Source: Bugula neritina | Taxonomy: Eukaryota > Animalia > Bryozoa | Reading direction: 5' to 3' | DNA length: 64,000 nt | Assembly (NCBI GenBank): GCA_964035545.1 | Contig: OZ037772.1 | Location: 4,183,538 to 4,247,537, forward strand | Shown here: piece after piece, positions 1 to 55,292 of the stretch | Numbering within the stretch: the first letter of the stretch is position 1 | Layout of the letters: each line of letters opens with the position of its first letter | Notes under the pieces: model-generated | Databases searched by the model: none | What the model saw: only the letters and a program-made list of their open reading frames with translations | Told to the model about the DNA's origin: nothing | Made by a program: the position numbers and the translations under genes

Positions 1-19
1 ATACGGCAGGAAGTTCCGC

Positions 20-2321
20 TTGCGGACCGACCACGCCACCTTGATTTGGTTATGTAAGAGAGCAGAACCGTCCAGCCAAGTCGCCCGATGGCTCGAGGTC
101 CTGGCCGAGTTCTCTTACCGGATCGAGCACCGACCCGGTAAGAAACACGGCAATGCTGATGGACTGAGCCGGCGACCGGACGAGAGGTGTAAACAGTGCC
201 TCAACATCGAGAAGAGGGACGGAGGTCCTCCAAAATCCGAGTTGAGAGCACTGAACCACTCTGAAACGGAGTATGACTGGGACCAGGGTCAACTCCTACA
301 GAAGGCCGCTACGCCCCCGGAGGCTATCCAACGCCTCCGTGCCAATCCTGTCTTGGCTGATAACGTTAGGGAGCTACGAAGACTCCAGGAGGACCTCCCT
401 GGAGTGGTAGCCGACGTATATCGTGCCAAAAAGGAGGGGCGACGACCCAGTAAAGAACAACTGCGACAGGGATGCACCGAGTTACGGTCGTACTGTCAAC
501 GTTGGGACTCCCTGCGGATCGGGCCAGATGGTCTGCTGACCATCACAGTGGCTGCTCACAACAACCAGTACGGCAGGAAAAGAGTGATCTGCCCAGCCGC
601 CATACGCCGGGAGTTAGTATGGGACACCCACAAACAGGCCCACGCCGGGGTGAGCAGGGTGCTCTCCAAGCTACAACTCCGGTGGTACTGGCCCGGCATG
701 GAGCGTGAGGTGCGGCGTAGAGTCAAACAATGCGAAATCTGCCAGGCCAGCAAGCATGGCCGTCTCCCTGGCGAAGCGGGACGGCGTAGGCTATATGCTG
801 GGAGGCCGTGGCAGGTGGTAGCTATCGACCTAGTCGGACCCATGCCCGTCACCCCCAGAGGAAACAGTTGGATCCTAGTATTAACCGACCACTTTACACG
901 GTGGGCGGACGCCCTGGCTATTCCAGATGCGTCCGCCCCCACGGTGGCCAGGGTGCTGGACCAAAATGTATTCTGCTATCTTGGACTACCTGAGCAAATA
1001 CATTCGGACCAGGGGGCTCAATTCCAGTCCCAACTGTTGAGCGACCTCTGCCGCCTCTGGGGAGTAAACCAAAGCAGGACCACCCCGTACCATCCTCAGG
1101 GCAACGGGGTGGTGGAACGCAACAACCCCATGTTGGGCGATGCACTGCACAGTCTGCTCCTCGGCCGGGGTCAGGAGGAGTGGGATACGGTACTGCCGCA
1201 AGTCATGCGGGCCTACCGTAGTACACCACACACCAGTACGGGGGAAACCCCTTACCTCCTGATGCCTGGTCGAGAGACGCGAGTGCCTGACCACCTCACA
1301 TACCACATCCCAGAGCAGGACTATACCATCCACGAGTATGCCAGTAAATTGATAGAGGACCTGAGGGCCGCACACGAAATACTTCGGGCGAAGCAGTGGC
1401 AGGTACGGCGAGAGGACTCTCAGGAACCACCTCTCTATCAAACTGGGGACTGGGTGTGGATGGTCAACTACCGTAGGCGTCGAGGACAAGCGGCTAAGCT
1501 CCAGCCTAAGTTTGTGGGACCCTACGTAGTAGTTGAGGCTATGCCCAATCATACGTACAAGTTGGAGCGATCTGGACAGGTCTCTGTCCAGAACGAAGCC
1601 CGCTTGAAACCGTATTGGGCTAGCTCAGGAGCAGCAGGAGCAGCCCCCCCCCGTTGTTGGAGCCCAGGAGGCAGACAGTAACGCGCGGGCGGCAACGGCA
1701 CGGACCAGAATACGAAGTGGTTGTGCCGCGGGGAGAGGACTTGGTGAGGCAGGAGACGCCACTCCCACCAACGGAAGTGCGCCTACCGCCCCCAGTACCA
1801 AGTCTACCCCCACCACTTCCGGTTCCGCATCCGCGTCCGGAAGTGCAAAACCCCCCCCCGTGGGAGGGGCTCCATCTGGAGACAACAGCGGAGAGGGGAA
1901 CACCACCACCAACGGCGGGCCAGAAACACCACAGGTGGAGCAAAATAGCCCACCAGTGAGTACGCCGCCCCAACCAACAGCTACAACTCCCTCTCCAGCT
2001 GATACGTCACCTCCCCTGGAACGGGGACAGCGTACTAGACAACCCCCAGCATACCTTAAAGACTTCATATGTGACCGTGTTACAAACGGCAGTTATGAAA
2101 GTCTAGCTGGGCACCGTACGGAAGGACTGGCAACAAAGCGTGGGAGTTGTGAACACCACGGAAATCTCAACTTTTGCGAAGGCGGAGTAGTAAACAAAAC
2201 TACTACGCCCGGGGCAAATAGTTCCAGCCGTGCGCAACAACCACGCTGCCCAGTCTTTTCGTACGCTGACGTTGTCAAGGGAAGACGCATTCAAACTCAA
2301 TCCACGGACATCCAAGCTTGA
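20..2321 (+). pseudogene. pol: pol 3' part (RNase H C-terminus, integrase, Pro-rich tail), broken by indels in C-runs
   Basis: RTDH..L.WL, HGNADGLSR, HHCC (HKQAH...CEIC), DDE (IDLVGP, HSDQG, VERNN), GPY module (PKFVGPYVV) and RTRQPPAYLKDF tail. Frame changes at poly-C tracts near 1644-1652 and 1850-1859 relative to the continuous frame in copy 2 (ORF 49766-50806). These may be real or homopolymer sequencing errors. Confidence 0.93.
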
Positions 2322-2386
2322 ACGCTGAGTATGATTACAAATACCGGGTTCTCAGGTAAGCTTGCTCTGAGCTAACATTTCCACTC

Positions 2387-3475
2387 ATGGAAACCAGTCT
2401 ACCATCAGTCAGTTCTGATTTAATCGCCTTGATTGAATCACAACTACTGGGGACTGAGTCCTACGTGAAAGGCGACGAGAACATAAAGATGGCCGACGAT
2501 CTACTAGATCTGGAGCTTGACACTATGTCTCTCTGTCAGTCTACACGACACGACTCAGTCCCTCGAGTGCTATCTGAAAAGATGTATGACTCCCAGACTA
2601 GTAACAGTCGGTTGTCATCAGAATTATGGTGTAAAGATCACATTCGATCTAACAGTAATTCTGCTCTTTTAGATACCGCTCTCTCTCCTCTCTCTGGTGA
2701 CATGCCGTCACTAGAAATGGCTTGGAACGAGGAACCCGTTCCCACTACTCTTCCGGAGGCACTCTTACAGCAGTCATGCTGGGTTACACCAGATACAGAA
2801 ACACTGATACGAGAGCACAAGGGAGACGACCAATGCACCACCTGCCGTTTATGCCAGCTTCACTTCACTACTCCACGAAGACTTCGAGTTCATATTCCCC
2901 AACATTATTTCACCACCTTTTGTCCCTGTGGACAGTATAGTTACCACAGGGACTACATCTTCCGTCACCAGCGAACTATGGGATGCCATGTTGGACACCT
3001 TTTCGGAGTCGACGAACCCTCCTTTCCACAATTCCTTAATCTCATCCGACCATTCATATCAGACCCAGCTCGCTATGAACAGCTGCGTCAGGAATTCCCC
3101 GCACCCAGGACCATCACACAGGGACCCTGCCCTAAACCACCCGGATATAGGAAACCACACGTACCCCGTCCCTCACCCCCCGCACGCACAGTGCCCCGCC
3201 CCGACTCTATACCAAGAGTCGTGTTACGACGCATCGATTTACCACAGCGATGGCGTCCCTCTCCCCCTGTCTCCCCAAGGCCTTCTCGTAAACGGCGTTG
3301 GCCATCTTCATCCCCCAACCGACACTCTGCCCCTGCCCGGAATCTAGGCGAGGCAGAAGAGCGGATACGAGAATTAGAGAAAGAGGTGCAAAGACTGACA
3401 CCGAGAATCTCCGCCGCCGCATCAGAACTCCGGGCCCTCTCTGCCTCTGTAGCCCGAATGAAAGGAAGTGCTTGA
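2387..3475 (+). CDS. Retrotransposon ORF3, 362 aa: acidic N-terminus, two C2H2-type zinc fingers, Pro/Arg-rich region with RKRR, C-terminal coiled coil; not Env-like
   Basis: ATG 66 nt after the pol stop. Motifs CRLCQLHFTTPRRLRVHIPQH and CPCGQYSYHRDYIFRHQRTMGCH; heptads LGEAEERIRELEKEVQRL...LRALSASV. Same ORF present in copy 2. Confidence 0.85.
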   Translation: METSLPSVSSDLIALIESQLLGTESYVKGDENIKMADDLLDLELDTMSLCQSTRHDSVPRVLSEKMYDSQTSNSRLSSELWCKDHIRSNSNSALLDTALSPLSGDMPSLEMAWNEEPVPTTLPEALLQQSCWVTPDTETLIREHKGDDQCTTCRLCQLHFTTPRRLRVHIPQHYFTTFCPCGQYSYHRDYIFRHQRTMGCHVGHLFGVDEPSFPQFLNLIRPFISDPARYEQLRQEFPAPRTITQGPCPKPPGYRKPHVPRPSPPARTVPRPDSIPRVVLRRIDLPQRWRPSPPVSPRPSRKRRWPSSSPNRHSAPARNLGEAEERIRELEKEVQRLTPRISAAASELRALSASVARMKGSA

Positions 3476-3837
3476 AGATGATATCTCCCAAACTCCCTAT
3501 CCGTGATGGTACTGCAGGTGGTGCCCCATCCCGAACCCTTCTCACGCCGGTGCTCACAAACAATTACTCAGTGTGACAATATATAGTAACCTACCAGTAT
3601 ACAGCTCTACCTCTATAGACTATCCCCTTACAAGTGCCTCCCGCCGGTGCCATTGTGTATTTACTGTTATATTTTTTTATATGTGTATATGTTTTCTTAT
3701 TACTGTACATAGCCATGTTTTTCTTTTTATGTGCCACACGCCCTCTCAGTTTTTTTAGTTTTATAACATTTTATGTCCGAATTTATTGTATCTGTGTTAT
3801 CAGAAAGTAGGGCTTTCTGCTGGGGGGGGGGGGGCGG

Positions 3838-4110
3838 TGTAGTGAGGACGTAATACACGCGTCCCCCAAACCCCTTCAGCCTATCGGAGTGCGTCACGTG
3901 ATAACCCTCAGCTAGTAGTAGTTTGTCAGTGGAGAGAGCGTACTAACTAAGCGAAGATGTAATCTCTAATCTGTGTACGTGCTGTATCTTTTATATAATT
4001 AGTAGCGAATAAACTTTGGAAACTCTTACTTAAATACTTTATTGATGTGGATAAATAGACTATAATTACAAGCTAGGAACCCACGCATAGTAATTACACA
4101 AATTACTACA
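3838..4110 (+). repeat. 3' LTR of Gypsy copy 1 (273 bp)
   Basis: TG...CA ends with a 6-bp terminal inverted repeat, preceded by the PPT; AATAAA at 4008-4013; matches 47988-48260 and 55293-55565 in reverse complement. Confidence 0.97.
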
Positions 4111-5639
4111 ATATAATAATCAACATACAAATGAGATGCTCTTGTCAGTCTATAATGATGAATATTATACACTGGAACTGGGTTACTCTCTCACCTCCCC
4201 TCACTGCAGCTCAGCTAGACCAGATCTTCCCAAGTGATGAAGATTTTTATTTCTAAAAATTTCAAGATTACATGTACTGTATATGTATAACTATAACTCC
4301 TTCATATTATGTAGTTCATATATTTATCCACACTACACACTACAATCTAAGTTTACTTCTACATCCATGTGTCTAATATTCACTCTACCCTAGCTGCTAC
4401 CCCTCCTACTATGAATGAAGGTTCGGAAGTTTGAATTGGAAGCAAAACCAACAGGAAGTTTAAGCAGCAATGCAAGCTCATTTCTATAAACTATACACAC
4501 TGCATACATATAGTGGATATATTTCCTGTGTTCCAGTGCAATCATCACATCATCACTCTTCATTATAGCAGCATCAATCCTTTCAAAGCTGAACTCAAGT
4601 TGTGACCTTGACATAATTCTATGATACAACTATCCTCACACTCAATAAATTATTAGAAAAAGAACCTGTTCCAGAGATATCTTTCAAAAAGCATTTCCGC
4701 GAATATCTTTGAACTTTTAACATTATTTGACAGTATTTCCCTGAGCTACCTTCATAAGAGAGTTACATGAGAGTGTTATTGAGCTGGTTTACAGTAAAGG
4801 ATGATTTGCTGAATTCTGTGTTTCCACAAGCAAACTCTACCCACACATTGCTGACAATACACTAACAGTTTTAGTGCCATTCAGCACTACCTTTTTATAT
4901 AAGATAGGATTCCTTCAATTAATATGCTAATGGTTAGGAATCAGCAAATAAACTGCCTTGACCTGCAAAGTGGCCTACAATGTACAGCTTGTCAAAACCC
5001 AAGTCAAACTTAAGCAAGCTGCAGCACAAATTCACCAGCTTCAGCCATCATATTAATAATTGAACTGCTCTGTGCTTTTTACATGCATAATGTAATAATC
5101 ATAATCTTATATAATAATCAAATATACTAGAACAAATATAGACTTCTATTGTATATTATGCCTATCATTCATAAATTGCACTTTTAGAAAGAGGAGAACT
5201 TAATAGTAAACAGTTATGGAAGGGGAGATGATATGGTATGAAAAAGGTTTGGAACCACTGAGCTAGAGGAACCACCATACCTCAACCATAGCATCACATC
5301 CCTCTGCCATCTTGATTGCAGCCTGCCAGTTAAGAAAATTCAAGATTAATCAGATGTTCAGTGATGTTGCTGAATATGCTAGTACTAAACAGCTCAACTT
5401 AAACATTATAAAAATATTTTACATAATGAAAGTACAAACAAAAAGATGCAAGTGCTAGCTGACACTCAAGACTACTAATAAGAGACAAAGTCCTTGTAAA
5501 GATTTTGCTACTAAAAAGGACATAGATGTTATCTGTAATTTTGTAATTTGAAAATATACAGGACCGGAATTGGATATTCTAAAATAGCTCAATTGAAAAA
5601 CATGCACACTTGGTGCCCTGGATAATTTTTTAGATTTCA

Positions 5640-5922
5640 ACCTTAGAGTTGTCTCTCTTCGACACTAAAATATAGCGCTCCGCTCAATGAATGCAACATT
5701 TCTTTCACGTGATTATTATAGAGCCGACCTTTGTAGTTGAGTGACGTGTTATAATCCTTCTGCGCGCAGAACTTCCTCGTTATTTTGGTTTTATTCATAT
5801 TGATATTGTGCCTTTTCTCACTTACTAGTTACCAAGTTTCTTACCAGTTTACAGACTGACACTATTGACTCTCGTGAGGTGAGAACAGTTTGAGTCATCT
5901 TATCATTTCTCAAATTAATCAG
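5640..5922 (+). promoter_or_regulatory. Probable promoter and non-coding first exon of TRIM copy 1
   Basis: CpG-enriched block conserved with 56383-56636, contains TCACGTGA (5705-5712) and ends at donor CAG|GTAC (5923), after which similarity drops. Confidence 0.55.
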
Positions 5923-7907
5923 GTACCCGTACTTTAATACTTGCAGTTAGATTTACTATTTTAGTATTTACTATTTTATTTAGTATTTTAGTATTTTAAT
6001 TTTAATTCTAGATTTACTTTTACTTTTAGTTTTAGTTTTAATTTTAGCCTTTAGGCTTTAGGTTTAAGTCTAGGCTTATAACTTATATAATATTAATATA
6101 AGATTAAGCTTAAGACTAAGTTATATTTAAATTATAAGTTATATAAATTAAAATTCTTACAGTTAATGTTATAATATTATTTAAATATAATTGTTTCTCT
6201 TTGAGTCTTTTATTTGAAATTTACAATAGACATAGTAATACCATAGCCCATATGGCCATAGGCATATGATCAATAATTAATTAATTATAATGATTTATCG
6301 AATAATATAAATATAAATATCGTATTAATGATATTAAATTTATTATTATTATAAAAAATTTAATCGACTTCAAGTTTAGGTTCAAGTTTTAATACTGAAA
6401 AATTAATCTACTAGTAGTAGTACTAGTACTGCTACGTCTACAGTAGTAATAGTGGTAGTAGCCTACGATTACAGATTACTATTACGTACTATAAGTATTA
6501 GTCTATTAGTAATACATGTACTATTAGATTACTCTTAGTATTGCTATTCGATTTACTGTTGGTATAACTATATAAGAATTGAGACTAAGTATTTCAGTTT
6601 CGCACTATTTTATTTATATAATTATTTGTATTAACTTTAAGTATTACTATTAGTAATCACAATTAGTATTGATATTGCATCTCCTATTAGGATTACTGCT
6701 ATTACTATTAGTATTGTTGTATGAGTAATTACTAATTAGTATTAGTAATTTTTACTCATTGCATTACATTTACTATAAGTATAACTATAAAGTGTAAGTT
6801 ACTATTATTGCTTTACTATAACTATCAGTATTAGCTTTAGTGTTGCAGTTGGTTTTACTGCCAGGTCCCCTACCATCATTAAATTTATTTATAATGATAA
6901 TCTTGGTGATTATCACCCAATATTGACTCATATGACTAGGTTAGCCACATTTATATGATCTACTATTGTTGTAAACATAAAAATATGAGGTTAGTGTTAG
7001 TAAATCATTTGCTAGGTAAGAGTGTAGAATAAATAATTGGCTAGAGATGAGTGTAGAAGCTGCCAACTCATGAAACAACTACACCTGACCTAACAGAAGC
7101 ACAAACTTGTTAAATTAGTGTGTTTCACACCACCATAGTTTCTATTAGATGATTAGAATAGCAAACTAGCAGTTGATGGCTTTTTCCCTGGCTGGTGGAA
7201 GAGTGAATCTAAGTAACATATTAAATCATGCATCACCAACACTGCAGAAATGTTAAAATGAATTTTGTCATTTAGATTATGGAGAAAACAAAGTATTTTC
7301 AACACCCAGCACAAAATATTTCATGAAACTATGTTTTCTCCCACTGCTATGTTTCCCCATATTTTGTGTCTTAGCGTGAGCCCACGCAATGTATCTAGCC
7401 CAAAAATGGGCAGGTAACATTGTAAAACTGGCTGATATCTTTGAATGAGGGGATAAGCAGCTGAGCCCAATTGTGCTGTTTGTTCATAAAAGTAATACAT
7501 AACTCACTGGTATTCATGTTTCACTTCTCTTCTATATATTAGAAACACTTGATTAGTGGTGTTCAATAGAAGTAGAATAATAGTGTTCACTGAAGCACAC
7601 AACATTGCTTCATATTTATTGTATATGGAGTTTGAGTCACCAGCAAAAACCTTTTCAGTGATTACAATGGAAACAATACAGCCTTTGTTAGAGAGTTAAA
7701 GCTGTGAGCTCAGCATGTTGTAGCTGACTATCACGTATACCAGTTTTATTAACTGCCTTTGTTTAACATTATTTTTCATGTCTTTATTTTGTATGGTTTA
7801 TTGTTAAGGGTTAAGTCTTTGATTTGGAAACCTTCACAGATGTAGTGTGAAATATTATGCTAAGAGTATGTGTATCTTTTACAGGATTTCCTTATCATAT
7901 AACCAAG

Positions 7908-10900
7908 ATGGCAGAATCCAGAGTTGTGAAAAAGAGACTAAACAATTCGTATCGCTGTGGGTACTGCTCGCAGTACTTCAACAAACTTGAAGATCCCAGA
8001 ACTCTGCCCTGTCTGCATGTGTACTGCATGAGATGTTTGAAGACTGACATCGGTGGTAGGAAGGATCATATTAGATGTGCTTATTGTAGGTGAGTTACAG
8101 TACATAACACAATATATCATGTCATAGGCTTGCATATGATTATCTCACTATCATCTATGAGTTGTCTGATCTGTGTCTATGAAAAGCAAACAATACTGTA
8201 TAATGTATATTCTATGTGAACTCTGGTTACCAACTTGTGGAGTGTGTGGATATCTTTTTATTAGGTTAAAAAGATATCTGTTATGTAGATTACATCATCA
8301 GCTGTCCTTTCTTGTTGCATTGTGGTGCTGTTGGATGTCTTGGGATTGGGGTTGTCTCCTCATTATATTATTTTGTTCTCATACAGTACAAGAATTGTTA
8401 GACCAACCTTTTTCATACCATCCCCACTTTCATACATGTTTACTATTAAGTCCCCTCCCTTTCGTCAATCGGAAATTTTTATGACTGTCATAATGATAAT
8501 ATAGATAACAATGCAACATTCTTCTCTTACATTTGAATATAATATAATTATTTCTGATAATTATATTATTATGCATGTATAAAACACAGAGCAGTTCAAT
8601 TATTAATATTATGGCTGCAGCTGATGACATTGTGTCAGCTTGCTTTCAAACCTCCCACCCCAACCCCTAAACCCCAACCCCAATATTGTAATTAAAACAC
8701 ATTCATGTAGAAGTAGACTGAGATGGCAGAACTGGTTAAATGGATAAGCTAAGAGGAAGGCTTATAGATATACAGGTACATGTAACTTGCAAGGGCTCAA
8801 AGTCTTCAACAAACTGCTTGAAATTTTTGAAATCAAAATCCAGGCTCCCCCTAAAAAGCCCAAAATTCCCTCTTATAAGGGGATTCTCCCAGGTTGGGAA
8901 CCACTGTGTTGAATTGGCTTGTGTTTCTTATCCTCTTTCCTGTGATTATAAACATGTATGATGTTGTCATGACAACAGAGTTGCTGTGGCACAAAGTACA
9001 GTTTACTAGTATGTAGTGATTGTGTAGTGAGAGTGGAGTGTCTGGTTATTGTCCATGCTTATGTGTAATCTGTAAGGAGTAGAATTATATTATTTTAATA
9101 TAATGTTGAGAGAGGTACTTTTATAATGGCAGTTTGCTAAATAGCTTTAGTTCTAATGCCATAGACTCATAGCTCTGGAGTCTAGCAGCTGCTACTATTA
9201 CCACTAGCTGTTCAAAATTCGGGCTGCCAAAGCATAATAGCCATTGACAAGGTCAAGCAGTCACTGGGAAATTATTTGACTAAAGAGCAGGTCTTATGAC
9301 AATTAGTAGTCAGTCCCTTAGACAGGAATCAGTGATTCTGTGACTTATTTAGTTAAATCCAATGCTGAACTTTTGATTGGCTATTAGATAGCCATCACAA
9401 TTGTAATTGGTACAATATATTATTATGGGGTGTCAATCAGTGTGTAATATAATCTGTGAATTGAGTGTCTCCTTTAGCTTTGATGAGTTGATTACTTCTT
9501 CTACCATCAGTCAGTTGTATTAAGTGTTTTTTTGTACTGAGTCATGAATAGTGTTGAGGATTTGGGCTTATATTATGCCAACCCCCCCTCTGACTTAGAC
9601 TGAGACCCAGCCTGCTGCACATACATAGTAGTACTACACTGAAGATAGTTAACATGTGCGTATATCATCCTACCAGTAATTGATTACTAATTACAACTTA
9701 TCCTATGACTCACTCTTCTTCTGCTAGCTGCATGAGATAGGCAACACTCACACGTGACACGAACTCACGGTGCGCTAGCTCTTGACACATTGCCAAGGAT
9801 GATGAAATGACAGTTTCGCGCCACTCCTAGCAGTTAGAGTGGCAGGGAATAGTTGTAGTATGTTGTAGTATTGGCTCCTCAGAATTCACTCCTCAGTAAT
9901 TAGTTGCAACATGCACTAGTAATAAACTTGCAACAGTAGTGAATAATTATTGACAATATGGCCTCCACTCAGTAGTTAACTAGTAATTTGTCTTGTCATT
10001 TTACAATACAAGTTACAGTTGAGTCTATTTGTTGAGTAGCAGTTCTTTGTCAGGAGTGACTATTTTCCAGCATATTAAGTACATAATATAGTCAAGTGTG
10101 TTTGTGTGATAGCCTGTGGTCTATATAATGAATGTCTGTTGATGAGTGATGAGTATTTATTTGAGTATTTGTCAAGGACATAGCTGTGTGTGTGTGGATG
10201 GAGTATTTCATTACTTGAGATATACTAAACACAGCTAACACAGGTAACATACTGATTGCTATATGTTGTAGAAAAGATCACTATGACATCACGGATCCCA
10301 CAACACTACCAGTAGCTCAGCATGGAGACCCCTTAGAATACAAGTCTCCACCCAAACCTGCACCCATTCCCTGCGATGTGTGTAAAGGTGGAACACAAGC
10401 TGCTGTGTTTTGTCTTGAGAGTCTAAAGAAATTATGTCAGCAGCATCAAGAAGTGAGTCTTTCTTATATAATTTCTCAAGATTAGTTACTAAACCAGTTC
10501 TGGTTTGTATGTAGAATATTATTGAAAAGAAATGTTGAGTCTGTGTGACTTTTTATACTAAACACAGAGTTTCACAGTGCAGTGAGTCAACTATGACAGA
10601 CTTGTTGGTGAAAATACAACCAACTAAACTGTTGACCTTTATTATACAGAATCACAGAGAGCTGATGGGAGATAGACATCAGTTTATTGACATTGAGGTC
10701 TACAGAGCTTCTCCCCAAAGATATACTATAACTGAATGTGAACATCATAAAGAGGAACAGCTGACAGAAGTTTGTTCCAAGTGTCACCAGATATTCTGTA
10801 TGAGATGTGATATGAGGACTGGCTGTAAGGATAAGACAGGTATTTACTTGCTGTTTCTATTTCTGTAGAGAGAAACTGAGAAATATTACAAGAACCTGTT

Positions 10901-13900
10901 ATTTATTATTTTATTATTAAAGTGAGTTATGTAACAGTAAAAGAGGAAGTCAATTTGTCAGCATTAAGGTTTGTGTGAGACAGAAGTGGATAGTGCAGGA
11001 GTTTATATTCTCACTGTTATGTTGAATATTTAGTATATTTCATCCTTCAAGTGTTTGTTTCCTTGATAAGATGGTATAGGCGTAGCTTTAACTCAGTTGT
11101 GTCCCACCTTCTTCATACCATTCCACATTGAACTATAATCCATAGGGTTATAGTTTCAGTTCAGTGCCATTCCATCTTTTATAAATGTTTTCTTTTGAGT
11201 TTCCGCCTCTTTGATAAAATTGTAATTTCATTTATAAAGAAAATCTTGGACAGGTTGTTTTCCTAATAATTCATTGAGTGTAGAAAAGGCCAGTGTGTTT
11301 GACATGGACCAGTGTCTGCCGCAACTTCAGTTCAGCTTTGAAAGCAGTGAGTTGATAATTAATTCAGTGTCTGCTGGAGAAGGTTGAGCTACAATCAACT
11401 CAGATAGCAATACTTGAGACAGATTCCAACTGTTTAGTAATTACATAGTATGTGTATAGTGATACATCATCAACCTGTAGTTACAGGTAGTAGGTATAGA
11501 ATAAGTACATATTGTATCTAAAAATGCTTTTATGAATAGTGTGATTTTATGTATACAGAGGAGACAGTAGCATCCCATGACTTGGCATCTTTGAGTGATT
11601 TGTCTTGTGAGTTACGAGAAAGTCTGACTGGTGGAATAGAGACTCTGTCTGAGAAAGTTGCAGAGTTGAATGACATCTCAAAGGATGCCTGGAAAGAACT
11701 GAGTAAAATAGAAGATGAAGTGAAGAAGATGGTTGCCAGAGTAAACGCTGTTGCTGACGCTCAGGTATGCTGACATGGTCATGTCATCTAATGTATTTCT
11801 GTTTGTCTGAAATTGGATTTTGCATGTGTTCTGTGAGTTGTAATCAGAAATGAATTTCATTTGCCACTAGAATTAACTGGCCATTAAAGTACTATCATTC
11901 TGTGTACAAGTAGCAGTAGCCATTCATCACATGTTACTCAGTGCAGAGGAACCTGTCAATACAGATGACTCACTCATCCTTCTGCAACTGTCAATCACTC
12001 ACACAGAAAGGTTGGCTGTGTGAGTGATTGACAGGTGTCAGGAGGAGGAGACTAGTCACGTGATGTACTAGCTCTCTGCTGTGTATAGAGTGTCACGTGA
12101 CTGAGTCATTGTCCACTCAGTGGGTGATCTGTCACTTTCATTTCAAGTGCAGAGGTTGTGAGGTGCAGATGTGGTTACACTGTGTTACTATTTATTAGAT
12201 AGAAGAGATTAGAAAGAGAGCCACAAACCTGCACACAGATAGTGGATAATTATAGAATAGAGCTGGCCTTGAGTAAGACAATGGGCAGACAGTCTCTGCT
12301 GGACACAGTACAACATGCAGTTGATAAGTTCAATGATGCAGGGATTGTGAGAGACTACAAAGAGATGAGTGAAAAGATGGAAAAGGCTACAGATATTGGT
12401 GTAATAGAGAAGTGTGTACTTCCAGACAGCATCTTGGTACCAACGTGTAGGTGGAGTCTATAAATAGTAACACTAACTATAAATAACTTTCTGCTTGTAA
12501 TTAGTTGAATTGTTTTCACTGAATATTTTAATAGTAGAATAAGTAGATAGAGTTTATTTATTAGAGAATTAAGTTTTGTTCTGCTCTCACATTATGAGAC
12601 ATTTCTGCAGTGTTTCAGAGTTTATGATGTATAAGTGAGCTGCTAAACTGTGTTATGCTGACTACCTGCTGTCAGTATTGACAAGATATTCTCACTTAGA
12701 CCTGTGCATCACGTAGCAACTTGTAGTAACTACAGACTGCTTGTATTTAAAACATCTTTTCATTTTAGGTTTGAAAAGCTGTTCCCACCTCCTCAGGTGA
12801 TGAGATTCTCAAGTTATAGAATTGTTATTTTGTTGTTGCAGACAGTGAAGACAGTCTGGGACTGAAGCTGCTGCAGCCACCAGCTTCTCTACAGTCTGAT
12901 GGACTTCCTGTACGTGGCTGGTGTTTCACAGTAAACATCTCAGCTGATGGACATTTGATGTGTGGGACACCAGGAGGTGTAGAAGTAATAAATAGACACA
13001 CTCTGAATACTATCAGCTCAGTGAAACACACCAACACTACAGGGTGGAGGGAGATAATCCAACCTGAAGGGGTGATGGTTGGCAGCTGGCATAACAAGAA
13101 GAAGAAAACAGTTGACGTCTCACTTCTTGATCCGAACTCCTTTGAGAAGACTCGCTCCCTCTACAGGCAGTCAGTAGATGTACCCTACACTTACTATAGA
13201 ATAGCTCAGCACGACTCACTGCTCTGTATTGTAGACACGAGTGAGAAACAGCTGGTAGTATGTAACCTGGTTGACAATAAAATACAGAAGTTCCCACTTC
13301 CTGAGATGAAGTACCCTTGGCCTGTATGCATCCTCCCAGACTCAACTCTCCTCATAGGTGGTAAAGTGAGAAGATTTAAAGTGGAGAACACAACTCTCAC
13401 TCTAATGTGGGAGTTTCCTCACATCTCAGAACCAACTGGTATTTCCTTTGATCCAACATCTGAACTGATTCACATCTGTACACTGGAAGGACCTCTCCTC
13501 ATCCTCTCACTTGAAGGTAAATACTCTGTTTATTATACTAAGTTTAGTTATTTTATATATAATTATGTTGTAGTAAATAATATATTTTAAAAATTACCAG
13601 TAAACAACTTCCACTCATGAGATATATTATGATATTGTTAGTATTTATCAAGTCACTGATGTTATTTTTAGCTAAAAGTTATGTAATAAAGACTGTAACA
13701 TGCTGATAGTAGATGTTTTATTCTTCATCACATGACTTGTAGCTAATAATAATATTAGTGAATAATACTGTCTCCCTGCAATAAGTTTATTTCCAGCTGC
13801 TGTAACATGCAGGATGTAAGCACAGGTAAAAGTGTATATTATATTGTATAGGTTTAAGTTGTACTCTGTGTAGTGTGCAGTGAGCTCTTAGTAAACTCTC

Positions 13901-23685: not shown

Positions 23686-26460
23686 AGAGCACCTGTCCCA
23701 AACTCCATCTCCACAAAGTCGTCGGCCACAATAGGTATTCTCCTGTCAGCAAAAAGATGTCTCACGAATTTCCCGTGTAAGTGTTTGTATCGGCCGTCTT
23801 CAGGGTGGACAGCCACGGCAGTGTCACCTACAATAGTTACCAGACTTTATAGTCTCTCACAGTATTAAGTATTGATATACAATTATATATTTACTGAGTC
23901 TTTACCAGATCCAACTTTACAGTCACTATACTCAGAGTACACAACTCCCAGTAAGTTAGTATCAAGCTAATTAACCACTAACCTCCCTATTCACGCTTAC
24001 CGTATCGTATCGTAACAGCAAATATCAGCCATTTTTACAAATGTCTGAGCTTCCTGTACGGTATTGCGGTACGGTAGGATCAAGCACTGCTTGATTCAAA
24101 TAAGTTGCGGCGGACTCCTATTGGACAGAAAAACTTTTGCGTTAATTCATTGGATATAAATGTCCAATGTAGCGTCATAGATCGTACCTATTAGCGGACT
24201 TTGAACACTTCAACCCGCACCTTAAACCAAAATGGAATAATAAAATTAAAGAACTTAGGCTATCTCAAGTTCTTCACTACTGCTCCTAAGTGAGAAAGTA
24301 AAAATAGTTAGAGAGATCTACTGGAGTTACTTCAACTGGCAGCAAGAGTCAGCTATTATTACGTTGCTAAGCAACAAAGCTATCAGTGACATTGATGTCT
24401 ACTAACCCAACATAGTTTCTAATCTAGTTGTGGCCACAATGATATTTTCGTCAGAGTCTTCTACTTTATATGCAAAGGAAAGGAGAACTCCGAACTCCAC
24501 CTTCTCCTTGTAGCCCGGCACAGAGAGCATAGTCCTTCCTGTCAACTCTACTTTGTCTACCTGCAATCAGTGATACAACTCTCTCAGACTATACAGGTCA
24601 AAGGTTAAACTGTAGTGTGTGCTTCTGAGTCACTGCGTTCTCATTCTTTTCTATTAGTTCACATTGTGTAAATGGATGCTCGTACGAATGAATATGTGGC
24701 TGTGGTCTCATTGATGTATTCATTCGAAGATAGTCATAATGTAATATATCAGGCTGTGTCTGAATACTACTATTAGGTTAGTTACTACCAACACACAAGT
24801 CTCGCAGTGAATAAACAGTTGACGTACACACAGCCGGGAGTCAGACTGATACTGTACGATATACCTCAATATCAGAGATGGCAGAGTTGAGAGTACAGGA
24901 CCAGTTGACCAGTCGGTTAGCTCTGTAGATCACACCTTTCTCGTGCATTCTGATAAACGCTTCGTTCACCGCTTTTAAAGATTTCTAATAAACAAGTATA
25001 TATGAGTCATGTGTCAAGTGTGAGCTGATTGGAGACCAGGCCTCATGATTAACCAATCATAGAGAGGATAACACACTGAGTCAGTAAACAGCCGACACGG
25101 CATATAGACTCCACTACTCAAACATAATATATGTATAGAGAGGATAACTCCTCACCTCATCCATAGTGAACGTAGTTCTGTCCCAGTCATAAGACCCGCC
25201 CACTTTCCTCAACTGATGGTAGATTCTGTCTACTTTTCTATAGAAATTATATAATAACACTGACCAATCGTTGGGCTGCAAAACTTAGTTATATTAGCAA
25301 CTTAAATAATGAGTCCAATGATAGAGTGTGATGAAGTAAACCTATATTTAACTTTTTGTATATTCAATTATATATAAGAATTTTATCATATTAACGCTAT
25401 TATATTATCTTATATCAAACTGTAGCAACTGCACACCAATAAGATAAAATAAAAACTTAAACCCGAATACTAAGTCGCTATGAAATGCATTTTCAAGATA
25501 AAATATTCCCTTACTGGTTCTTCCAGTCCCACACTCGTCTCACAAACTTATCTCGTCCCAAATCGTATCGAGTTTTATTCTCTTCTAAAGCGAGTTTTTT
25601 CTCGACGACAACTTGATTGGCTATTCCTGCGTGGTCACATCCGGGTACAAACAGTGTCACCTTCCCATTCATCCGGTGCCTGACAATACAACAGAACTGA
25701 CACCTGCAGACACCTGACAACACAAGCATATCAGACACCTGCAGATATTCTGGAAAGGTGCTGAGAGAAATATCTGTGGTTGAAACAACATCAATATAAT
25801 AGATGAATGACTTATGCCAACCGGTACTTAACACAAATTTTATCAGCATTAAAAAAAGAAGTAACAGGGGGATGTTCATAGCCTGTCTGTGGAACATCTC
25901 AAAGTGAGTTGGCAAGATGCCGAAATGTCATGTAGTCACCACCAGAGGAATGGTGTCTACTGTTACATGCTATTAGCTACATACACCACCAGTTTAGTGA
26001 CTAGGTAAGTACGGAGTTGTCTCATCTATATGAATGAACATCTCACCACCGAACTATCGCATCCTCAACCGCCCCCGTGAGGGCGTGTCCTAGGTGAAGA
26101 GTCCCGGTCACATTAGGGGGAGGGATCATGATGATAAACTTCTCTTCAGGTGTGAGTTTCAGCACATCTCTACCTGTTACAAAGCAACCAATCACATCTC
26201 TCTCGGTTACAAAGTAAAAAGCAACCAATCACAGTACCTGTTACAACAGAGTAACAAATCACACCTCTACGTGTTAGAAGTAACCAATCACACATTATAG
26301 ACTTTACTAGGATGAGAAGTGTACCTTTGAGATTATACTCAGGTTTGAAAAATCCTTCCTTCTCCCACCAAGAGTACCAGGCAGCTTCCACATAGGACGG
26401 GGAGTAAGAATCAGGCATGGGACACGTCGTGTCTAGAATAACAGAAAACTATAAAGTATA

Positions 26461-29059: not shown

Positions 29060-29528
29060 TGTTGTGGTGGGGTTTTACTAATTTTGAGTATTATAAACTC
29101 ACCGAATAATATATTTAATATGGCCTTGGGGTGAGCTCGGGGTCGGTGTGCAGTTGCGGGTTTATAGCTTGGCTGCGAGGTAACTCCAGCTCCTGTCTGT
29201 CTGGTAGGGGTGAAGTTGAGACTCCGGGTTAGAGTAGTTGGCTGGTGGTGCTCCTCGGTCTATGGTCCTGAGCTAGCACTCACAAACGTACTCTAACACA
29301 TTCTAATTAGGTTGCACACATTCTATATAACTATTCACAATCGTTCCTCAATCTGTCTCAAGTCTTCCCCATTCTCCCATTTTCACTAGGTTATATAGCT
29401 ATCACACTCACACAAGCCACACCCACACTATAAGTAATATTAATGTCAAACTTAGAGTTGTGCACCCCACACACATGCAACAGCAAGAGATGACAACTAC
29501 ACATATACTTATAAATCCAGATATAACA
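29060..29528 (-). repeat. 3' LTR of the Gag-only element
   Basis: Direct repeat of 34568-35036. Confidence 0.96.
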
Positions 29529-29964
29529 TTCTCCGTCACAATAAAAATTTACAGTTCCACCTGTAAATACTTGACTAGGGGCATTGCGATTTAAGGATAA
29601 ATATTGCAGTAACAAGGTTAAACTATTAAATATGTAATTACTTTAGGATTACTGGACATATTAGAACTTGCAATATATTAGACATTGGGTATAATTGATA
29701 TTAATAGACGTATTGGAAATTACTACATACATAGTAACTTTTATATATAGCTGTGAGCGTCTACTAGCCTCACAACTGTTTAATAGGGCTGTGGGATTTA
29801 CTACTACTATTGACCAAGTTATAGAATAGGTAACATACAAGAGAACAGCACAGCAAGAATTAGTTCAACTTCTGTCTATTGAAAGTTGCAAATTTCCTTT
29901 TGTTACCTTTTATAAAATAGAGCCTATCAGACAAAATGCTATAGATGCATGTATGCTATATATG

Positions 29965-29997
<33 letters not shown>

Positions 29998-32950
29998 ATA
30001 TATATATATTTTTTTTTTTTAATCACCTTGTGGATCACTTTATGTTCTATTGGAAGAAATTAGTATATTAAATATTAGTCTGTACTATACCTACACTTGA
30101 AAAAAATAAAAAACGTTTATCCAGTAAATATAACCATAATATGTTAGTGCACGTAGCATGTAGCATGCAAGATCTGAACGATGAAACTTGAACAAGCCAA
30201 GACCTAGGTAGAAAGTAGCTTCATCAGTCAGCGTTTATTTATTTTTTTTTTGCAGTGATTGCATCAATTTCTATTTTTTTTTTTTTAAACTAAATGAGTT
30301 AGCACGACTTAAATCTGAATTTTATAGTTAACTAAGCATTATAAATTAAATCTTAAAATTGAAAATTATGCAGGGTATTTGTAAATGAGTTGTGGCTATG
30401 TAGCCCTATCTTCAAAGAAAGTATCAATTACTATTTTTCTAGATTATGAGATATTATGAGACATATGCAATTTAATTATAAGCTTACTTCCACATTAAAT
30501 ATAATAACCTTTTAATCTGACAGATGTTGCCAGACCAATTATTTTGATTAATGACTTATCTAATTCTAAGTAGCCCCTCTTATTAGTATAAAATCGGCAA
30601 GGATTAGCATAATTAGTATAATTTATTCTATATACCATCTTTGTAACTATAGTGGAAAAACTGTAGTCTGCAATGTTATACACACAGTAATAGCAATGGC
30701 CTTGTATTATATTCTGTTTATATAGCACTAAACTCATATCAGCGGTTACTCTAATCTGTGGGACTTGAACTAAGGAATTATAATTAATTACTCCTGACTT
30801 TTAATATTGGCTGTGGCGACTTACATTTATAAGCTTGTATTCAATGCTAATTCCAACTATATACATATCAAGCACATTATATGGCGTGGGAAAAGACTAT
30901 AACGGAGATTGGAGTATGGTGGTACCAGTCTATACCAATGTAATATGTGATTAAGGATTAGAGGTCTACGTAGATAAGTGTATTTACTGGGGCTAGTATA
31001 TTTCTTTATAAGGATAAGGCTAACATAATTAATATAATATGATGACTGTATGAGCCTGTCGTAAACTAAGATGTATATAAATATGGAGAGAATGACAATT
31101 GATATAGGCAATAGGCCTGAGTATCTTTATCACAATAATAGAAATGTCTACAAAGTAAAATCCAGGACCCAAAAGAGAATGGAAACACCTTCATCATACA
31201 GAGTTGTGTAATATAATATCTCAAGCAATAATTTCAAGCTGTCTTGCTGGGTAAGGCTTACAGCTCATTAAAGTTTATGTTTGGTCTACTATTTCCTAAA
31301 CTGTCTAGTTTGATTCACTTAGAGCCAGCTATCAGGTTAATTAACAAAACTACTTCCCCTTAGATTATCACTAATTGCTTCCAACCTTCAGAACTCAACT
31401 ATGTCAACATTTTCCTAGAGAATAAAAATTAACCTCTGATTATTGCTCCAGCAGCAAGATGATATCAATTAATAAACACTATGAACCTGTAGATTCACAA
31501 GACTATGGTTGTCATACATATTGAACTTTTCCAGTTCATTGATAATACACATCAGTTAGAGAGTAATAATGGTATGGTGCAGTAGTCACAGACGATGACT
31601 ACCTACCAGCTTGAGTTTATCAAGGTATATAGGCCTGCGTGGTTGGTAATGAGCTTAATAGATGATTACTTCAAGAGAAAATCTTATAAGGCGATAAGAC
31701 GTATTATATATTAATTCGATTAGTAATTTGACTAAATAGTATTGCACTCAGGTATAAGAAGTTTTAATTAAAGTTAACTAAGGCCATAATCTAAACAAAA
31801 CATGGGAGTGACTGAGACTGTACAGGTGGCAGCTGACATGCCCCATGCGCTGCAGTCACATGTAGCAATGCCAGCCCCCACAGTGCCTGTCTCCACATAT
31901 ATCCTACTAACAATAACGCTTATATTCTATTCTCCTCTTGAAAAAGTAATTGCAAACAACATTGATCCCTGGTGACTCTTATATGAGTTTGGTACACATA
32001 ACTACAGTATAATATTTTTATAGCTAGTTTTATTTATGTTTTCAAATAAGTAAATTACTGGATTACTGTCGTGTCATAGCCTACTAAATAAAGTCATATA
32101 CTGTCGTACGTGAGGCGCCAGCACAAGTTGTGCTTAAATGTGCGGCGTGGCCAGGCAGCAGCAGCGCTTCATTAATAGAAAATTCACAACATGAGATTGT
32201 ATACATATATCCATCACCAACATATAGACAGTGGTTAGTATTAATAGCTAGCATGCAGGGTAGCAAAATGCACCAGAGTAATGTGCACTCAGTCTATTTC
32301 ATACGTCTATGAAATTTAGTCTAGTCAATGTCAGAGTATAGAGCTCTATGGACGTCCAGTAGTAATTTTTGTTTTTTGCAAGGCCTGTAAATTTGTTGTA
32401 TTTTCGTACGGATTTATGCATGCTGTCGGTATACCATTATGAAATTTTATATATTCGATCTGTGTCGGTGTCCCATTTTCTGTAGTGATTCTACGTACGT
32501 GTTGCCCTACTGACGTGTCGTCATGGCGATATAAATTATACAATTGTTTTTCGATTCGTTTGTTGTTCGGGACAGTTTGTGTTTAAAAGCGCTTTATATA
32601 AATTATCGTATGTAGCCTATTTGTTGAAGTAGCCTATATATATTATGACAGTATACTGTGTAGCCCTAGTTTTACGATTGAAGTTTAACGTCATTCTGGA
32701 CGAGCCCTGTAATTCCATAAAATTGTTAGTATATGTGCACATACATTGAATGATGGCCTGCAAGCGTCCAACAGCTCGATAGGCTGGGACTACGGAGTAA
32801 ATAGTATATCGAGTTGGGCATTAGTGGCTTGTACATGTCCAACAGCCGGATGGGCTGGGACTATAAGAAACTAATATGGAGATTTATAGAAACTCTTAGG
32901 CTGGCTACATAATGGGCTAGTAATTTAATTATATAAATACCTATCTAGAT

Positions 32951-34258
32951 CTAGGTACTGAGGGCTTGTATTTGGGCTAGAATATTGTTATTGTTCAGAC
33001 TGCCAGGGGGGAGAGGGTCAAGTCTGACAATGACTTTTGAGAAGTATCTCAAAAGCTTGTTGGCCAACCTATAAATGTATTTGGTGTGTGGGCCGAATTT
33101 TGGCTTACTCAACTTAGGAAAAATTATTTTGTAATTTCCAAGTAATAGAATACCGTTATGCCCTTGGGTTTGACATTTAACCCTGCCACTTGAGTAGATG
33201 TCTTTACCCAGTTTAAAGATAAAAGTGACGCCAAAACAAATGCTTGTGATGGTGCACACCAGGTGTTGCAGGGTAGAGAAAAGCATGTATATAAGAAGAT
33301 ATATGGCTGCTGTCACAGGGTGACTGCACACATTAAATACCTTATCAGAGGCTTTCGAGCTTGAGTGAAGGTTGGGTGTGGCAGTCATCACATCCTGATG
33401 AAGGCTTGCAGCTATCTTCTCTTCTGGTGAGACTTTGCTAGTAGGTCGGGCTTGCTCTCCAGTAGCTGAACATGGCGATGCCGATGGACAGCTGGGGTTC
33501 ATACCTTCTGCCTCAGTGGTACCGTCTGAGGTTGCAGGTATTTCCGATGCTGGGTTGCAGTGCTGGGTGCTTCCGGCAGGTTGTGGGGTGGAGAATCTGG
33601 ACTCGGGGGTCTGGGTGTTTGATTCTTCATCTGCCGGTCTGCACTCTGAACCTACTTTAGTAATAATACTGGCGCAGATATGGCATTTGGTAGGTTTCCT
33701 ACTCGGACTGTCCACGCTGTGCTTGTAGCAGAGTGTGAACAACTCCTCTATGGTTGGTGGATTTTTAAACCTACCTGCCAGTTGTGGCAGCAAAATGTAA
33801 CTTAGCTCACGGTTACCTACGCCAGTAGCAAAAGTCTCACCTATAATTGTAAGTTTTGAGCCACTATCTAGCATATATAGATTATTGCCCTCATCGATAA
33901 CTCTACATAAAAAGTCTTCTGTAGACTCATGGGCCCTAATATGGAGGTCTAGGAACTTTTTCATCTTTGTAGAGTGGTTCTTATTAAACTTTTTGTCAAG
34001 AACATTAATCAGGGTGTCAAATGAGATTTGGAAATTTGTAGACCTTACAATGTTCTGATAACTTTGTTTTGCATTACCATAGAGACAAAGGCCTAGGAAT
34101 TTAACACTTTGCTCATCTGTGAGGTTGAGAGCTTTTGCTCGATAGCTAAAATCAGCTTTGGTTCGATACCAATTGTCAGAAATATCACCAAATTGATGAA
34201 CAAAAGCCCAACTTTTGGGGCATCTAAATAAGTGGCACCAGTCACTACATGTGGCCAT
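32951..34258 (-). CDS. gag: Gag-like protein, 435 aa, with Pro/Ser/Thr-rich linker and C-terminal hydrophobic segment
   Basis: First ORF after the PBS. Capsid-like pattern LNLTDEQSVKFLGLCLYGNAKQSY...FDTLINVLDKKF...ESTEDFLCRV...ETFATGV...PPTIEE; partial knuckle KCHIC; hydrophobic VTAAIYLLIYMLFSTLQHLVCTITSICFGVTFIF. Confidence 0.75.
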   Translation of the reverse strand: MATCSDWCHLFRCPKSWAFVHQFGDISDNWYRTKADFSYRAKALNLTDEQSVKFLGLCLYGNAKQSYQNIVRSTNFQISFDTLINVLDKKFNKNHSTKMKKFLDLHIRAHESTEDFLCRVIDEGNNLYMLDSGSKLTIIGETFATGVGNRELSYILLPQLAGRFKNPPTIEELFTLCYKHSVDSPSRKPTKCHICASIITKVGSECRPADEESNTQTPESRFSTPQPAGSTQHCNPASEIPATSDGTTEAEGMNPSCPSASPCSATGEQARPTSKVSPEEKIAASLHQDVMTATPNLHSSSKASDKVFNVCSHPVTAAIYLLIYMLFSTLQHLVCTITSICFGVTFIFKLGKDIYSSGRVKCQTQGHNGILLLGNYKIIFPKLSKPKFGPHTKYIYRLANKLLRYFSKVIVRLDPLPPGSLNNNNILAQIQALST

Positions 34259-34552
34259 TGTGTAATAGAAAATGCTATATAGGCTATTTATATATGAAAT
34301 TTGTTTATGTAAGCCTATGTATGGTTAATCATTTTTGCTTGCACAATAGGATAAATGATATAATATTTCCACCCCATATTTAAAACAGACACGTCCTCGT
34401 GTCAATTTGTGCACAAATCAACAGTAAGATAAAAACAAGCCACATTAAAAAAACAAATTGGAAAAAACTAACTGTACGGGACTTCTATGGCAGTCTCAAC
34501 TAATAAAACACACAGATAGACTAAGAAACTGGAGCGGTGCACGAGAGCGATT

Positions 34553-34565
34553 GGCACCTCCACCA
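34553..34565 (-). promoter_or_regulatory. Primer binding site complementary to the tRNA-Ala 3' end
   Basis: TGGTGGAGGTGCC on the minus strand, 2 nt from the 5' LTR; eukaryotic tRNA-Ala ends ...GGCACCTCCA-CCA. Confidence 0.75.
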
Positions 34566-34567
34566 AA

Positions 34568-35036
34568 TGTTGTGGTGGGGTTTTACTAATTTTGAGTATT
34601 ATAAACTCACCGAATAATATATTTAATATGGCCTTGGGGTGAGCTCGGGGTCGGTGTGCAGTTGCGGGTTTATAGCTTGGCTGCGAGGTAACTCCAGCTC
34701 CTGTCTGTCTGGTAGGGGTGAAGTTGAGACTCCGGGTTAGAGTAGTTGGCTGGTGGTGCTCCTCGGTCTATGGTCCTGAGCTAGCACTCACAAACGTACT
34801 CTAACACATTCTAATTAGGTTGCACACATTCTATATAACTATTCACAATCGTTCCTCAATCTGTCTCAAGTCTTCCCCATTCTCCCATTTTCACTAGGTT
34901 ATATAGCTATCACACTCACACAAGCCACACCCACACTATAAGTAATATTAATGTCAAACTTAGAGTTGTGCACCCCACACACATGCAACAGCAAGAGATG
35001 ACAACTACACATATACTTATAAATCCAGATATAACA
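34568..35036 (-). repeat. 5' LTR of the Gag-only element
   Basis: Direct repeat of 29060-29528; adjacent to the PBS. Confidence 0.96.
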
Positions 35037-47937: not shown

Positions 47938-47987
47938 TTAATCAACATACAAATGAGATGCTCTTGTCAGTCAATAATGATGAATAT

Positions 47988-48260
47988 TGTAGTAATTTAA
48001 GCAATTACTATGCGTGGGTTCCTAGCTTGTGATTATAGTCTATTTATCCACATCAATAAAGTATTTAAGTAAGAGCTTCCAAAGTTTATTCGCTACTAAT
48101 TATATAAAAGATACAGCACGTATACAGATTAGAGATTACATCTTCGCTTAGTTAATACGCTCTCTCTACTGACAAACTACTACTAGCTGAGGGTTATCAC
48201 GTGACGCCCTCGGATAGGCTGAAGGAATACGGGGGACGCGCGTATTACGTCCTCACTACA
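47988..48260 (-). repeat. 3' LTR of Gypsy copy 2
   Basis: Abuts the PPT complement CCGCCCCCCCC at 48261-48271. Confidence 0.97.
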
Positions 48261-48612
48261 CCGCCCCCCCCAGCAGAAAGCCCTACTTTCTGATAACACA
48301 GATACAATAAATTCGAACATAAAATGTTATAAAACTAAAAACTGAGCGAGCGTGTGGCACATAAAAGAAAAACATGGCTATGTACAGTAATAAGAAAACA
48401 TATACATATAAAAAAATATAACAGTAAATACACAATGGCACCGGCGGGAGGCACTTATAAGGGGACAGTTTATAGAGGTAGAGCTGTATACTGGTAGGTT
48501 ACTATATATTGTTACACTGAGTAATTGTTTGTGATCACCGGCATGAGAAGGGTCCGGAATGGGGCACCACCTGCAGTACCATCACAGATAGAGAGTTTGG
48601 GGGATATCATCT

Positions 48613-49700: not shown

Positions 49701-49765
49701 GAGTGGAAATGTTAGCTCAGAGCAAGCTTACCTGAGAACCCGGTATTTGTAATCATACTCGGCGT

Positions 49766-55231: not shown

Positions 55232-55272
55232 GATATTCTAATACTTCTCATTGTTCTTATACAGTAGCTAGA

Positions 55273-55291
55273 AATCCCACCGCTGCCACCA
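55273..55291 (-). promoter_or_regulatory. Primer binding site complementary to the tRNA-Leu 3' end
   Basis: TGGTGGCAGCGGTGGGATT, 1 nt from the 5' LTR; eukaryotic tRNA-Leu(AAG/TAG) ends ...AATCCCACCGCTGCCA-CCA. Confidence 0.92.
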
Positions 55292-55292
55292 C

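Follow-up and report, generated by a model that had tools for sequence, protein, structure and literature searches.

Two copies of one Ty3/Gypsy retrotransposon family lie upstream of two paralogous TRIM genes in a 64,000-nucleotide stretch of Bugula neritina DNA (contig OZ037772.1, positions 4,183,538 to 4,247,537; the whole stretch is called the window here). The two elements entered the duplicated host sequence at points 51 bp apart. They are separate integrations and not one insertion that was later duplicated or inverted. This pair is real and mildly unusual. It hints at a local landing hot spot, but a dedicated targeting system is not demonstrable from two events. Copy 1 (1-4110, plus strand) is represented by its 3' part only, as the start of the window truncates it, and aligns with 52088-47984 of the second locus at 97.7% over 4118 columns. 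Copy 2 (47988-55565, minus strand) is full length, at 7578 bp. To the right of each copy lies paralogous host DNA (4111-12734 versus 55566-64000) that can be matched block by block and that contains one plus-strand TRIM gene in each locus. We found no further copies, solo LTRs (long terminal repeats) or extra paralogues of the spacer between the two insertion points within the window.

The 3' LTR of copy 1 (3838-4110, plus strand) is 273 bp long, starts with TG and ends with CA, and has a G-rich polypurine run ahead of it. Its terminal CA at position 4110 is followed by ATAT (4111-4114). We presume that this ATAT is a target-site duplication; the 5' end of copy 1 and the partner ATAT lie outside the window. 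Next come the spacer of locus 1 (4115-4161), a single unoccupied ATAT that we call site 2 (4162-4165), and a conserved block of host DNA (4166-4241) that matches 55570-55645. In locus 2, site 2 is filled by copy 2, which is flanked by ATAT on its left (47984-47987) and on its right (55566-55569). The spacer of locus 2 (47937-47983) is an ungapped match to that of locus 1, and it adjoins a 17-bp satellite of 125 copies found by TRF (45799-47937) that ends there. The locus-2 counterpart of the ATAT beside copy 1 (47933-47936) is unoccupied and lies within the last partial satellite unit. It has one mismatch and reads TTAT, with an ATAT 2 bp further right.

The two loci can be compared base by base across both sites. 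The stretch that includes the spacer (4112-4165 versus 47934-47987) runs in the same direction in both loci and aligns ungapped, with 2 mismatches in 54 positions, and the right flank (4162-4241 versus 55566-55645) aligns without gaps with 3 mismatches in 80. Each locus is empty where the other is occupied, and exactly one copy of the 4-bp site is present at 4162-4165. The distance between the insertion points is 51 bp in each locus. Both elements face the spacer with their 3' LTR and lie in opposite orientations, and the bases flanking ATAT at both sites are A or T. An earlier note on this DNA had claimed that copy 1 (plus strand) ends at 4110 before an ATAT, that the site at 4162-4165 is empty in locus 1, that copy 2 (minus strand) fills the paralogous site with an ATAT duplication, and that the kept orientation of the spacer excludes a simple inversion. 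The sequence bears out each of these points.

The LTRs provide a second line of evidence for independence. Copy 2 has a 273-bp 3' LTR at 47988-48260 and a 273-bp 5' LTR at 55293-55565, both on the minus strand, and these two align without gaps with the LTR of copy 1. Copy 1 alone differs at 11 sites, and a single copy-2 LTR differs at 2 and 4 sites. The two LTRs of copy 2 differ from each other at 6 positions (Kimura two-parameter, or K2P, distance of 0.022), and they differ from the LTR of copy 1 at 13 to 15 positions (distances of 0.050 and 0.058). The two LTRs of copy 2 are sisters, each being the closest relative of the other. The reciprocal empty sites, the clean 4-bp duplication around copy 2 and the sister LTRs of copy 2 together establish that the integrations were separate, as the earlier note had held, and that both post-date the duplication. 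A single ancestral insertion followed by an inversion is ruled out, because an inversion that moved an element across the spacer would have flipped the spacer, and because the LTR site patterns pair the two LTRs of copy 2. Nor was an old insertion carried along by the duplication. That history would group the two 3' LTRs, and no such grouping is seen.

We then compared the age of the elements with that of the duplicated host DNA. Divergence (K) between the two copies is 0.012 in the pol part, 0.018 in open reading frame 3 (ORF3), 0.041 in internal non-coding sequence and 0.058 in the LTR. In the host flanks, the exon blocks have a K of 0.015, the DNA beside the sites 0.039, the non-exon blocks taken together 0.062 and the region upstream of the RING exon 0.083. 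The neutral-looking parts of the element are about as diverged as the host flanks (4-6% versus 4-8%), and the two are not distinguishable when non-coding element sequence is set against host non-exon flanks (29/625 versus 322/5410; Fisher test, p = 0.21). The claim that the elements are far more similar to each other than their flanks are is correct for the coding parts only (K of 0.012-0.018); it fails for the non-coding parts (0.041-0.058 versus 0.039-0.083 in the flanks). The LTR pair of copy 2 is a different matter. With 6 differences in 273 positions, it is less diverged than the host flanks, both against all non-exon blocks (322/5410, p = 0.007) and against the region upstream of the RING exon (130/1663, p = 0.0003). 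Copy 2 therefore inserted after the two loci had split. Base composition also sets the element apart from its surroundings. Host DNA is strongly depleted of CpG (observed/expected ratio of 0.34 at 35% G+C), whereas the element retains a ratio of 0.81 at 54.5% G+C. The difference points to heavy methylation of the host genome and to an element of comparatively young age.

A gap of 51 bp must be judged against the frequency of possible target sites. The window contains 844 ATATs, or about 13 per kb, including 53 in the satellite and 37 to 56 in each upstream stretch. The two insertion sites are successive ATATs, in stretches where the median distance from one ATAT to the next is 40 to 55 bp. If both insertions are assumed to lie within the visible duplicated stretch, they would fall within 51 bp of each other with a probability of 0.010 to 0.035 for uniform positions and of 0.022 to 0.062 when positions are drawn among ATAT sites, the ranges reflecting how much DNA is counted as available. 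The earlier note had argued that ATAT is unable to explain a 51-bp window. This does not hold as worded, because the sites are neighboring ATATs and the conditional chance is 1-6%. The pair came to notice only after the fact, so that the gap, though unusual, is not compelling.

The immediate neighborhood has been altered repeatedly. The island of homology around the sites is short, with 80 bp beyond the spacer. Apart from the Gypsy copies, the DNA within about 150 bp of the sites contains at least two lineage-specific indels. One is a 168-bp insert present in locus 2 only (55646-55813), with a second copy at 62471-62613 (86%). The other, a 793-bp block present in locus 1 only (4302-5094), ends in a sequence that matches repeats dispersed to 8568-8645 and 59171-59251. 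Together with the Gypsy pair, these indels make four lineage-specific structural changes in about 250 bp of host sequence, and such clustering indicates a zone that is generally insertion prone or insertion tolerant. The RING exon, which is the first recognizable TRIM coding exon, is 3.7 kb from the site in locus 1 and 2.9 kb from it in locus 2, and not the 0.9 to 1.6 kb that had been given as the distance to a TRIM promoter.

We suggest, with about an even chance of being right, that these were two independent integrations into a small zone that is both favored and tolerated, and that a preference for ATAT set the exact base. In this scenario, the integrase would have inserted one Ty3/Gypsy family twice into adjacent ATAT-type sites, after the TRIM locus was duplicated or after two haplotypes split. 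The sites bracket a 47-bp spacer at the junction of the 2.1-kb array of the 17-bp satellite with unique DNA. An integrase preference for a short AT-rich palindrome would fix the exact base. The landing zone may be favored as accessible, bendable AT-rich DNA at the satellite edge, and it may be tolerated as a place distant enough from the gene for an insertion to do no harm. No dedicated recognition device would be required. What the sequence shows is that the insertions were independent, that copy 2 is flanked by an ATAT duplication, that each locus is empty where the other is filled and that the surroundings are rich in insertions; the cause of the local preference is our inference.

Several points weigh against this scenario. 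There are just two events, and they were spotted after the fact. Another 53 ATATs are available in the satellite and 37 to 56 upstream, yet both insertions are at one edge, and a preference for ATAT alone gives this outcome a chance of only 2-6%. Both 3' LTRs are turned to the spacer, which would fit a factor bound between them, although this arrangement is expected by chance half the time. The local accessibility of the site is presumed, and the 5' junction of copy 1 lies outside the window.

Plain coincidence is the first alternative, and we consider it fairly unlikely. The family would insert into AT-rich sequence throughout gene-poor DNA, and two unrelated insertions would have happened to fall at adjacent ATATs of paralogous stretches. 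A conditional probability of 0.01 to 0.06 is not vanishing, and the number of unseen comparisons is large, because the pair was selected by a reader in search of oddities. The family also looks abundant and diverse, as do its relatives, with thousands of Pol relatives and 74 ORF3 clusters, and the 64-kb window contains three LTR elements. However, both paralogues were hit by the same family within a few kb. Unless copies of the family are packed very densely in this genome, a coincidence is then far less probable than the conditional figure suggests.

A dedicated targeting system encoded by the element is the second alternative and is, in our judgment, unlikely. Some part of the element would recognize the spacer or the DNA next to it, either by sequence or through a host factor bound there, and would direct integration to either side, in mirrored orientation and about 50 bp apart. 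The candidate parts are a conserved integrase tail and a zinc-finger and coiled-coil protein, which would be ORF3 here and the end of Pol in relatives. We therefore describe the element before weighing this alternative.

The order protease, reverse transcriptase (RT), RNase H and integrase, found by Pfam in the Pol of copy 2, is that of Ty3/Gypsy elements (Metaviridae). The direct TG..CA LTRs and the 4-bp ATAT duplication around copy 2 also fit a Ty3/Gypsy LTR retrotransposon. The Pfam domains of Pol are protease, RT, RNase H, the zinc-binding and core domains of integrase, and a Tf2-1-like SH3 domain. The closest solved structure is Ty3 Gag-Pol (7q5b, E value of 4.7e-118), and the closest named Pol, an arachnid "K02A2.6-like" protein, is only 42% identical. 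The pol of copy 2 (49766-54298, minus strand) extends from the protease through the SH3 domain to a long tail. It is broken by in-frame stops, of which there are 2 by comparison with three relatives and 1 by comparison with three others that have less alignment coverage, and it has no frameshift. The part of pol present in copy 1 (1-2321, plus strand; integrase part and C-terminal tail, with Pfam matches to rve, Integrase_H2C2 and SH3_Tf2-1) is broken by 2 frameshifts and has no stops. These frame changes were counted against the relatives P0075 and P0076, and there are 2 frameshifting indel differences from copy 2. ORF3 is intact in copy 1 (2387-3475, plus strand; 362 aa) and has 1 frameshift in copy 2 (48613-49700, minus strand). 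Both copies are damaged. In the gag position, copy 2 has an ORF of 270 aa (54419-55231, minus strand) with no Pfam match. A G-rich run stands ahead of the 3' LTR and a stretch starting with TGG follows the 5' LTR; the window offers no host tRNA for comparison with the latter.

The integrase ends in a tail that continues for about 250 residues after the SH3 domain. The tail is proline rich and mostly predicted to be disordered, and it is also present in the relatives P0075 and P0076 (in copy 2, it is encoded in the region of 49766-50806). Pfam gave no Chromo match at an E value of 0.01 or below in any pol piece of either copy, in agreement with the earlier note, which had described the integrase as lacking a chromodomain. 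More broadly, neither Pfam nor PDB sequence searches found a known domain in the tail. We rejected a chromodomain or other reader domain there on the basis of these sequence searches; the AlphaFold model of the tail has a mean pLDDT of 48 and is too poor for searching. The tail is a second candidate for contacts with host proteins.

ORF3 is conserved. It has 74 relatives at 50-76% identity, all from environmental contigs, and its length is held near 360 aa. The N-terminal third is acidic, with a net charge of -13. The folded core contains two zinc-binding motifs, whose Cys and His residues are kept in 18 to 21 of 21 aligned rows. The matches of these motifs to C2H2 zinc fingers are weak and fall under the curated thresholds. 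Model confidence is 84 to 94 across residues 171 to 240. A Pro/Arg-rich basic stretch with a net charge of +16 leads to a 45-residue C-terminal helix. ORF3 is predicted to be a protein with a coiled coil besides the two zinc-binding motifs. A search with the model found no fold match in PDB or BFVD. We also considered an envelope gene, as in errantivirus-type Gypsy elements, and ruled it out. The highest 19-residue hydropathy mean is 0.93, no Pfam envelope family is matched, and there is no PDB or BFVD fold match.

The zinc-binding module of ORF3 also occurs inside Pol. A profile HMM built from an alignment of natural ORF3 relatives was used to search the Pol relatives. Among the 120 best of these, 12 have the module close to the C terminus of Pol, and all 12 belong to the 42 with at least 1500 residues (P0224, P0226, P0228, P0230, P0234, P0252, P0260, P0262, P0273, P0275, P0276 and P0277). 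Pairwise comparison of the ORF3 module with Pol relatives gave E values of 6e-16 and 7e-8. Members of this lineage thus carry the predicted module in one of two ways, at the end of Pol after the integrase or in an ORF of its own. This placement suggests a function linked to the integrase, which may be target choice. The main new points here are that ORF3 is no envelope gene and that its zinc-binding module is fused behind the integrase in some Pol relatives. The literature searched gave no description of a Gypsy element with a zinc-finger module in ORF3 or in the tail of the integrase.

These features are what speaks for a dedicated targeting system. ORF3 is conserved in sequence and length across its relatives, its paired zinc-binding motifs keep their Cys and His residues, and its basic stretch and long C-terminal helix would suit such a protein. 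The fused module of the relatives leaves room for element-encoded targeting, and it occupies the Pol end where chromoviruses have their chromodomain. The earlier note had guessed at a part for ORF3, and the conserved zinc-binding motifs and the fusion to Pol lend this guess indirect support. The mirrored orientation and the spacing of about 50 bp also recall Tf1, which inserts at -9 and +19 around a Sap1 motif (PMC5741268). Against this alternative, there are two events only. The spacer yielded no significant repeated motif. Its ends form an inverted repeat that matches at 13 of 15 positions, but 9% of host 166-bp segments equal or beat this, and the two sites are at different places in the arms of the repeat. 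We dropped a symmetric binding site at the spacer for these reasons, namely the share of host segments that are as good and the differing arm offsets of the two ATATs. The zinc-finger matches are under the curated thresholds, and the fold searches with the model gave no match. A zinc-finger protein could equally serve in transcription, RNA handling or defense against silencing. In addition, the other lineage-specific indels nearby indicate that the zone is not special to the Gypsy family. One particular form of this alternative is that a zinc-finger solution replaces the chromodomain. A two-finger, dimer-forming module would read the DNA sequence, or a structure at the satellite edge, and would steer integration to either side, about 50 bp apart and mirrored. 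We think this quite improbable. A Pol III gene as the target is ruled out, because the whole window contains no tRNA gene by ARAGORN and no Rfam match.

An assembly artefact or a non-independent origin is very unlikely. Haplotypes laid out in tandem, a chimeric join at copy 1, or an old insertion moved by rearrangement or gene conversion would find room in the facts that the 5' end and flank of copy 1 are outside the window and that the loci differ by 2-8% with many indels, a level that also occurs between haplotypes of very polymorphic invertebrates; but the LTR site patterns contradict one ancestral insertion, the spacer is not flipped as an inversion would require, the LTR of copy 1 is 13 to 15 bases from both copy-2 LTRs and so marks a distinct copy whose join falls exactly at the LTR end beside ATAT, and, if the loci were haplotypes, the coincidence of two insertions 51 bp apart would remain, at one locus.

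Two insertions into a favored and tolerated zone would fit the known insertion-site behavior of related elements. Several Drosophila Gypsy clades regularly use ATAT as their target, namely the 412 clade and the Idefix clade with 297, Quasimodo and Transpac, and their palindromic target motifs reach beyond the duplication (PMC3276498). The present element resembles these families in its 4-bp ATAT duplication, its palindromic AT-rich target, its Ty3/Gypsy Pol order and its third ORF after pol (PMC3276498). It differs in that its ORF3 is not envelope-like, in that its host is a CpG-depleted metazoan, and in that its nearest named Pol is only distantly related, at the 42% identity given above. The Idefix clade, that of the 297/17.6-like elements, has C..G beside its ATAT (PMC3276498), whereas the present sites have A or T there. 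Site preference commonly gives repeated insertions of one family at one place, including an inverted pair of LTR elements at ATATAT (PMC5932611). Such double insertions share with our pair that one family inserts repeatedly at or beside one site. However, both copies are at one locus in those cases (PMC5932611), and here there is one copy per paralogue, with sites 51 bp apart.

In Drosophila, the ovo promoter is a hot spot for mdg4 (gypsy), with insertions grouped within tens to about 200 nt and near OVO sites (PMC12919034). As in the present pair, these are independent insertions of one Gypsy-type family, clustered upstream of or within the regulatory region of a gene. The ovo hot spot is supported by a large number of recovered insertions and by reporter arrays of binding sites (PMC12919034), compared with two events here. 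Tf1, which belongs to the Ty3/Gypsy group, has insertions clustered at -9 and +19 around a 21-bp Sap1 motif, so that two favored positions bracket a short bound motif (PMC5741268). By our own sum of those figures, the two positions are about 49 bp apart. The Tf1 pattern emerged from very many mapped insertions, however, and our spacer yielded no motif. Ty3 and Ty1 are tethered at Pol III genes (bioRxiv 10.1101/2021.07.27.453949; PMC7459421; PMC6101501). Budding yeast Ty3, with its TFIIIB tether, is the paradigm of base-precise targeting (bioRxiv 10.1101/2021.07.27.453949), and its Gag-Pol is the closest solved structure to the present Pol, but the present window is without a tRNA gene or Rfam family.

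Chromoviruses carry a chromodomain at the C terminus of the integrase. They therefore have an extra module behind the integrase, at the same Pol end as the module in 12 of the 120 best relatives of the present element. In place of a chromodomain, the lineage described here has a pair of predicted zinc-binding motifs and a coiled coil, and in the present element these form a separate ORF.

Landing sites of retrotransposons decide how much harm is done and how gene regulation is reshaped. Only for retroviruses, one case in Drosophila and a few yeast elements has site choice been worked out in mechanistic detail. If targeting by the element were true, a metazoan Gypsy lineage with a conserved zinc-finger module at or after the integrase would be a new candidate for sequence-directed integration, and the present pair would be its first footprint. 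If the closeness of the sites reflects a tolerant AT-rich zone only, the pair is a case of ordinary site preference and a caution against inferring mechanism from two events.

The remaining features of the window concern host genes, repeats and an unrelated element. TRIM gene A (7857-13590, plus strand) has exons for a RING domain, a B-box and two coiled-coil segments, and a C-terminal exon that is distantly NHL-repeat-like; it was searched one exon at a time. Its paralogue, TRIM gene B (58462-64000, plus strand), is truncated by the end of the window, and its exon blocks have 97-100% protein identity to those of gene A. Another 17-bp satellite of 112 units is present at 38688-40593. Its unit is unrelated to that of the satellite at 45799-47937, and its edges are without an LTR element. 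The third LTR element of the window (29060-35036) is unrelated to the Gypsy family. It has 470-bp LTRs and a 4-bp ATCA duplication, and its sole sizeable ORF (435 aa, minus strand) has no Pfam match. The LTRs are 100% identical, and the element looks like a very recent insertion; it may be non-autonomous. Finally, an exon-like ORF at 25511-25915 (minus strand) matches class I aminoacyl-tRNA synthetases (Pfam tRNA-synt_1, E value of 2e-14), so that a further host gene lies between the two TRIM paralogues.

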